Shown one piece after another: positions 12,719 through 12,813 of a DNA stretch of 64,000 nt (within the stretch, counting starts at the first letter, position 1; each line of letters begins with the position of its first letter). The DNA is from Pavona decussata. Its lineage: Eukaryota. The stretch covers positions 682,001 through 746,000 of the forward strand of contig CDRNST010000013.1 of assembly GCA_977016875.1 (NCBI GenBank), written 5' to 3'. The position numbers and the translations under genes were made by a program. The notes below the pieces were generated by a model. It had not been told where the DNA came from and did no database searches. It saw only the letters and a list, made by a program, of their open reading frames with translations.

Positions 12719-12799
12719 TTCGCTTGATCGACAGAATGGCATTGTTCACTTTGTCTCATCTCCTTTTATACGTGAGAGGAGAGACCGCTGAGAATAGTA
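12719..12799 (-). repeat. Split direct repeat A2 (81 bp)
   Basis: Identical to 19155-19235. Confidence 0.95.
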
Positions 12800-12813
12800 C
12801 TTTATTCTCAACG
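12786..12813. other. Putative YR recombination site at the B1/A2 junction (11-6-11)
   Basis: CGCTGAGAATA-GTACTT-TATTCTCAACG; arms are inverted at 10/11. Confidence 0.7.

Follow-up and report, generated by a model that had tools for sequence, protein, structure and literature searches.

Which site does the tyrosine recombinase (YR) of a eukaryotic retrotransposon recognise, and at which bond does it join the element to its target? To our knowledge, integration of DIRS, PAT and Ngaro elements is still a model drawn from sequence comparisons, and we know of no recombinase of this class with a defined binding site or cleavage position. The question is raised here by an insertion in the coral Pavona decussata, within a stretch of 64,000 nucleotides (assembly GCA_977016875.1, contig CDRNST010000013.1, forward-strand positions 682,001 to 746,000) that we analysed as a whole and call the window. 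The original prediction, made from the letters of the window, was that a dif- or loxP-like palindrome at the meeting point of two internal repeats, B1 and A2, is the donor attachment site of a circular form of the element, which would integrate into targets sharing three or four bases with it.

Architecture of the element and its internal junction

By its sequence, the inserted element is a young, probably PAT-like retrotransposon of the DIRS order in an anthozoan (Table 1). All of its genes lie on the minus strand, and its two crossover bonds are 6,713 bp apart. It encodes a reverse transcriptase together with a tyrosine recombinase in place of a DDE integrase, as elements of the DIRS order do; Pfam matches are to RVT_1, ALOG_dom, Phage_integrase and zf-CCHC. 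The catalytic residues of the recombinase are present, namely R (GDRGSD), K (WGKT), HSFR, W and Y (LYY). Its closest relatives are also cnidarian (Porites, Oculina and Actinostola), and the only solved relative found in a PDB search is a plant ALOG protein, which matches in the ALOG domain only. A short leader ORF and a 69-bp tandem array are further features of the minus strand.

Table 1. Features of the element and its recombination site, in window positions. The caret marks the crossover bond.
Feature	Position	Strand	Remarks
Whole YR retrotransposon	12519..19235	-	6,717 bp including the AGTA shared by both ends
Repeat A1 (sense orientation: B2'), left-end terminal	12519..12579	+	98% to 12792-12856
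Repeat A2, internal	12796..12856	+	direct repeat of 12519-12579
Repeat B1, internal	12701..12799	+	92% overall; final ~80 nt identical to 19137-19235
Repeat B2 (sense orientation: A1'), right-end terminal	19137..19235	+	direct repeat of 12701-12799
Tyrosine recombinase ORF	12989..14287	-	zinc ribbon, ALOG domain, catalytic domain
Pol ORF	14568..16763	-	reverse transcriptase, RNase H-like region, further C-terminal region
Gag-like ORF	17149..17658	-	CCHC zinc knuckle (zf-CCHC)
28-mer core: CGCTGAGAATA (left arm), GTACTT (spacer), TATTCTCAACG (right arm)	12786..12813		internal B1/A2 copy of the end-to-end junction
Extended imperfect palindrome	12770..12829		~23-25 pairs per arm, one bulge
Third partial outer-arm copy, between A1 and B1	12661..12676	+	16 nt, complementary to 12534-12549 and 12811-12826
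Inferred crossover bond ATA^GTA, left arm/spacer border	12796..12797	+	donor spacer always at left junction, donor arm always at right
Pseudo left arm from target, window insertion (TTGGAAAA-A)	12511..12519	+	5/8 positions match TGAGAATA
Target-derived spacer equivalent GTATTA	19233..19238	+	empty allele, other samples: GTAGTA

In sense orientation the repeats follow the order A1'-[ORFs]-B1'A2'-(~120 bp)-B2'. Split direct repeats whose internal pair lies downstream of the YR gene are the layout of PAT-like and Ngaro elements (PMC4157794, PMC8547959). The long inverted terminal repeats of DIRS1-like elements are absent; the terminal repeats are direct and split, with inversion only over ~25 bp at the tips. 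Pat1-like elements (in their echinoderm form) and Ngaro share with the coral element the arrangement A1-[gag, pol, YR]-B1A2-B2, with internal repeats downstream of YR, and a zinc-knuckle gag, but the coral element has ~120 bp of unique sequence between A2' and B2'. A methyltransferase domain downstream of RT/RNase H separates PAT from Ngaro, and a Pfam search found no match to such a domain in the Pol ORF of the coral element. However, an Atlas feature search with Pol leads to clusters with Dam (PF05869) in 11-75% of their members, and the C-terminal region of Pol may be a degenerate Dam-like methyltransferase; the AlphaFold model of this C-terminus, with a pLDDT of 54, is too poor to use. The zinc-knuckle gag and the Atlas lead to Dam-carrying clusters favour a Pat1-like assignment. 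Pat1-like elements have been reported in Cnidaria (PMC4157794).

The family comprises at least 40 copies with 98-100% identity in the junction region, plus one more match at 91%. Twenty full copies measure 6,574-6,918 bp, and 13 of them retain a full-length recombinase frame; the 19 copies with a long alignment share 98.4-99.3% identity with the copy in the window. Copy lengths differ in steps of roughly 69 bp, which suggests a variable number of units in the 69-bp tandem array (window 18071-18930).

The 11-6-11 site is present exactly where B1 and A2 meet, as noted at the outset. Its arms are complementary at 10 of 11 positions and are separated by a 6-bp spacer, which is the canonical layout of a YR core site of the loxP/FRT/dif type (inverted arms of 11-13 bp, spacer of 6-8 bp). 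Joining the end of B2 to the start of A1 gives an identical 28-mer, in line with the claim that the element's two ends rebuild the site. The proposal that the 28-mer is the donor attachment site needs a correction: it is a template copy of the circle or end junction, but the chromosomal 28-mer is an internal copy and not the donor itself. The symmetry also exceeds the 11-bp arms first described, with 16 of 18 positions paired in an ungapped alignment, and the extended palindrome corresponds to the element's ~25-bp terminal inverted repeats brought together. Taken alone, such a palindrome is not unusual: the window contains three 11-6-11 palindromes with at least 10 of 11 matches where 0.8 are expected from shuffles. 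The signal lies in the position at the junction and in its conservation in related families. The two other palindromes lie at 28338-28365 and 44742-44769 (AGCTTCCCCTT...AAGGGAAGCT, and the AGCTATTGACA/TGTCAATAGCT pair).

For that comparison we used nine related elements from other cnidarian assemblies, with recombinases 50-70% identical, making ten families with that of the window; L051 (Porites lobata) and L057 (Actinostola) were omitted for their complex or unclear repeat patterns. Split direct repeats occur in all nine. On the sense strand, the junctions of all families read arm...AATA, NNNNAC, TATT...arm'. When 11-bp arms are compared, 81 of 110 cells are complementary at a spacer of 6 bp, against 20-45 at all other spacings from 0 to 12. 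The inner AATA/TATT is invariant, and the outer bases are family-specific and covary. Arm symmetry, the loss of which in related families had been named as grounds for abandoning the idea, is therefore conserved in the nine relatives. Within the spacer only the AC beside the right arm is conserved (in window orientation, the GT beside the left arm), and this is the side on which the crossover maps. A motif positioned relative to the junction like the third outer-arm copy, with family-specific sequence, is found in eight of the ten families. From its layout and conservation, the joined-end junction is probably the core recombination site of the element's own ALOG-type recombinase.

Target sites and empty alleles

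A first look at the genome gave at least 162 candidates, from which we assembled logos of 30 independent left and 21 right junctions. Every left junction reads N^GTACTTTATTC (30/30), with A at -1 in 28 copies and T in two. Every right junction of the two-ended copies reads GAGAATA^N (21/21), followed by G at +1 in 18, T at +2 in 17 and A at +3 in 9 of the 21; the last of these enrichments is not significant. The general core is A^GT and not the GTA or AGTA that had been predicted. AGTA does stand at both ends of the window copy (12519-12522 and 19232-19235), as had been noted, but this holds for only 6 of 21 copies, the window copy and five others.

Targets had been described as lacking recognisable arms. 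On the contrary, the 30 independent left flanks mimic the donor's left arm. Measured against local background, the left flank (n=30) is enriched for T at -8 (21/30, p=9e-6), A/G at -5, A at -4 (p=1e-5), A at -3 (p=3e-7), T at -2 (p=0.002) and A at -1 (p=8e-13), and 3' of the crossover the target is enriched for G at +1 (p=9e-11) and T at +2 (p=2e-6). The resulting logo, T-N-A-R-A-A-T-A^G-T, carries ~6.6 bits and repeats the donor left half-site, TGAGAATA^GT, in degenerate form. Any mimic of the right arm is at most faint, in the form of a T-rich stretch from +9 to +11 (p 0.03-0.07). Across the crossover, donor and target are identical without interruption for 3.9 bp on average (range 0-8 bp), which agrees with the 3-4 bp of homology anticipated. 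In a contig of run X18, donor sequence (GAGAATAGTACTTTAT) continues 10 bases past the usual crossover and diverges behind 12806. This may represent a rare insertion involving long homology, a copy that was rearranged, or the other class of crossover.

We next consider whether the extended palindrome has some other function. It might serve mainly for single-stranded structure, in template switching or end joining during reverse transcription, with recombinase recognition secondary or confined to the innermost bases; the structure could be a hairpin at B1/A2, or genomic RNA (or plus-strand DNA) could form a 5'-3' panhandle. Pairing reaches 20-25 bp in all ten families, longer than usual recombinase arms, and sense-strand folds are the more stable in nine of ten (summed, -269.7 vs -215.8 kcal/mol). 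The sense strand has 17 G.U pairs to the antisense strand's 5, although the families are related and these counts are not independent. The third outer-arm copy keeps its distance and covaries between families, and an internal complementary region of DIRS-1 is needed for retrotransposition (PMC7192593). However, structure leaves unexplained why targets mimic the inner arm and the GT, why the spacer is fixed at 6 bp and why only its dinucleotide on the crossover side is conserved. As the main function of the palindrome we consider it rather unlikely. The two roles are not mutually exclusive, and because structure fails to account for the target logo, we treat it as an added role and not as a replacement. 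Part of the junction symmetry may serve RNA or cDNA structure in reverse transcription, and the sense-strand bias of the hairpins hints at selection on RNA or plus-strand structure.

Contigs of runs X17 and X20, which carry the same species label and come from other samples, cross the unoccupied window locus. In these empty alleles the left flank runs through ...GGAAAAGTA directly into the right flank, GTAAAAGGAAGTTCAAG.... These alleles are exactly as long as predicted and contain AGTA once, so the insertion in the window is polymorphic and precise. Across ~420 flanking bases, the sole difference between empty and occupied alleles is the base right after AGTA (window 19236), which is G in the empty alleles, T in the occupied ones (the window and run X18) and C at that spacer position in the donor. 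The empty target reconstructed earlier was thus correct except for one base, G for T. This G/T difference may be a linked SNP or an integration footprint.

A second empty site comes from a copy (L040) that sits in a MITE whose candidate copies number more than 1,000. When the two flanks of L040 are joined, three paralogous MITE arms align over the join ungapped. Together with the empty allele of the window locus, these paralogues bear out the claim that insertion is precise, with neither target duplication nor deletion. Absence of a target-site duplication, which is characteristic of the DIRS order, is seen in X17/X20, in the MITE paralogues and in the unequal ends of 15 of 21 copies. The MITE, which has ~90-bp terminal inverted repeats, has received the element three times independently, at positions a few bases from one another (L040:1-319 and 7035-7434; L027, L030, L034:1869-2036).

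These junctions bear on two other explanations. The AGTA on both sides of the window copy could be taken for the 4-bp target-site duplication that a staggered cut leaves, and the palindrome for a chance occurrence, as three of its kind in the window against 0.8 by chance might suggest. The inequality of most element ends refutes a duplication, as does the single AGTA in the empty allele; AGTA likewise occurs once at the internal junction. A chance palindrome is refuted by its conservation with covariation in the nine related families. We give this explanation practically no weight. Alternatively, a linear double-stranded cDNA whose ends are fixed (GTACTT...GAGAATA) might be inserted by host end joining at breaks with microhomology, in which case the B1/A2 copy would only template the ends and the recombinase would not be the integrase. 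There is short homology at the junctions, and linear cDNA dominates in DIRS-1 (PMC7192593). However, end joining would leave ragged junctions, whereas the ends are exact in 21/21 copies and no base was lost or added at either of the two empty sites. In addition, the left flank is similar to the element's other end, a likeness that requires the two ends to be taken together as one site, and the recombinase gene is conserved with its catalytic residues. We find insertion by end joining very unlikely, and return to recombination at the joined-end site.

Position of the crossover and strand exchange

All 30 left junctions carry the donor's spacer and all 21 right junctions the target's, and in the six relatives having both ends the spacer stays with the same element end (6/6). 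Since the donor spacer is always at one junction, the crossover is placed at a single bond on one arm/spacer border. The equivalent bonds at the element's ends lie between 12519 and 12520 and between 19232 and 19233. Placement at exactly one bond is pinned by one copy (L042) that has no homology on either side and whose empty site was not seen. Target flanks of the six relatives match the adjoining arm at 41 of 72 positions. In one related family (L055, 11790-11810) the target flank matches the donor arm at 7/8, and in another (L052, 11880-11910) it shares AGCGGTC; both insertions may have hit remnants of older copies, as reported for DIRS-1.

The likeness to dif and loxP therefore holds for the 11-6-11 geometry but not for the reaction, because a reaction with two exchanges spaced by 6 bp does not account for the junctions. 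The spacer identity and the exchange at both spacer borders that mark sites of the loxP/FRT/dif type are not found here, where targets share only G at +1 and T at +2. A second exchange 6 bp away would produce heteroduplex spacers, and after replication the donor spacer would be found at either end about equally. A Tn916-like 6-bp heteroduplex resolved 50:50 is ruled out by the one-ended spacer in all three sets of junctions. We also rejected an overlap region over GAATAGT, since the junctions in that stretch are not uniformly donor or uniformly target.

The strand that an arm-bound tyrosine recombinase cuts is the one carrying that arm 5' of the scissile phosphate. The enzyme then tests the first 2-3 spacer bases by strand swapping. 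The junction data fit this scheme for one strand only, with arm-like sequence 5' of ATA^GTA on the plus strand and then G-T.

Taken together, we think it likely that the 28-mer represents a joined-end core site of the YR and that it undergoes a conservative crossover with genomic pseudo-sites at a single bond; this is the best explanation overall. The two inverted arms around the asymmetric 6-bp spacer would bind the element's own recombinase, and a circular or otherwise end-joined donor would recombine with a pseudo-site made up of a degenerate arm (T-N-A-R-A-A-T-A) 5' of the cut on the window's plus strand and G-T homology 3' of it. Insertion by this route would be precise, with nothing duplicated and nothing lost. 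In the simplest reading only one pair of strands would be exchanged, that of the plus strand, which has the polarity of first-strand cDNA, and the product would then be fixed by replication or second-strand synthesis.

Exchange of one strand pair in this form is a tentative proposal that we rate as possible rather than probable. Recombinases on the donor arm and on the genomic half-site would cut the strand with first-strand cDNA polarity, test two bases and join. The one-armed target logo and the junction pattern fit such an exchange. Junction folding favours the sense strand and not first-strand cDNA. CTX phage and integron cassettes are documented cases of single-strand-pair exchange with replicative resolution (PMC3442271, PMC4792948). 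Against a circular donor, the cDNA detected for DIRS-1 is mostly linear and single-stranded (PMC7192593). We infer that the polarity of the exchanged strand is that of first-strand cDNA, the form detected for DIRS-1, and it is possible that the donor could be single-stranded cDNA as reported for that element.

Relation to known systems and significance

That a circle integrates through ~3 bp of homology at its junction, leaving no target duplication, is already the published DIRS model. In that model, proposed for DIRS1-like elements, a circular junction of ~3 bp recombines with an identical genomic sequence (Goodwin & Poulter 2001 and Poulter & Goodwin 2005, as summarised in PMC3266345 and PMC7192593). 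The coral element resembles DIRS1-like elements in having an internal sequence that templates the joined ends, short junction homology, no target-site duplication and its own YR. It differs in its split direct repeats, with terminal inverted repeats of only ~25 bp, and in a shared core of A^GT as opposed to NTT/AAN. The degenerate target arm and the one-sided crossover seen in the coral element also go beyond the DIRS1-like model. In the open literature we found no description of a palindromic arm-spacer-arm core, a half-site target logo or a one-sided crossover for such elements.

Among eukaryotic YR DNA transposons, the short terminal direct repeats of Cryptons and Starships reflect microhomology with the target and not duplication (PMC3212892, PMC13465315), as in the coral element. 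Unlike it, they are without reverse transcriptase, split repeats and an internal copy of the junction. XerCD/dif, CTX phage and the attC x attI reaction of integrons share with it the 11-6-11 geometry and possibly the exchange of a single strand pair at the arm/spacer border (PMC3442271, PMC4792948). However, these systems are bacterial, their host or integron recombinases are unrelated to the ALOG-type enzyme, and they target one defined site, as opposed to the ~6.6-bit pseudo-sites of the coral element. An element of cnidarians, hence eukaryotic, with an ALOG-type YR of its own does not belong to XerCD/dif.

The integrases of Tn916 and CTnDOT, also tyrosine recombinases, can work with a heterologous overlap, needing only ~2 bp of homology beside the site cleaved first. 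They exchange both strand pairs, 6-7 bp apart, and their coupling sequences end up at either end of the element. The coral element's spacer, in contrast, is at one end in every junction of both sets.

The original interpretation is partly supported: it was right in outline, but what it describes is the published DIRS model, to which the core geometry, the target logo and the asymmetry are additions. Its suggested use as an integration tool looks unpromising at present because target specificity is low, ~6.6 bits amounting to about one potential site per hundred bases. What this young, polymorphic coral family does offer is a set of testable parameters, namely a 28-bp core, a fixed 6-bp spacer, a crossover bond and a target logo, along with a strict asymmetry of strand and side common to nine sister families, and these are enough to design binding, cleavage and integration assays. 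If exchange of one strand pair is true, it would make the integration of YR retrotransposons mechanistically explicit, and the family would exemplify a natural recombinase able to put DNA into half-sites of ~7 bits with no duplication.
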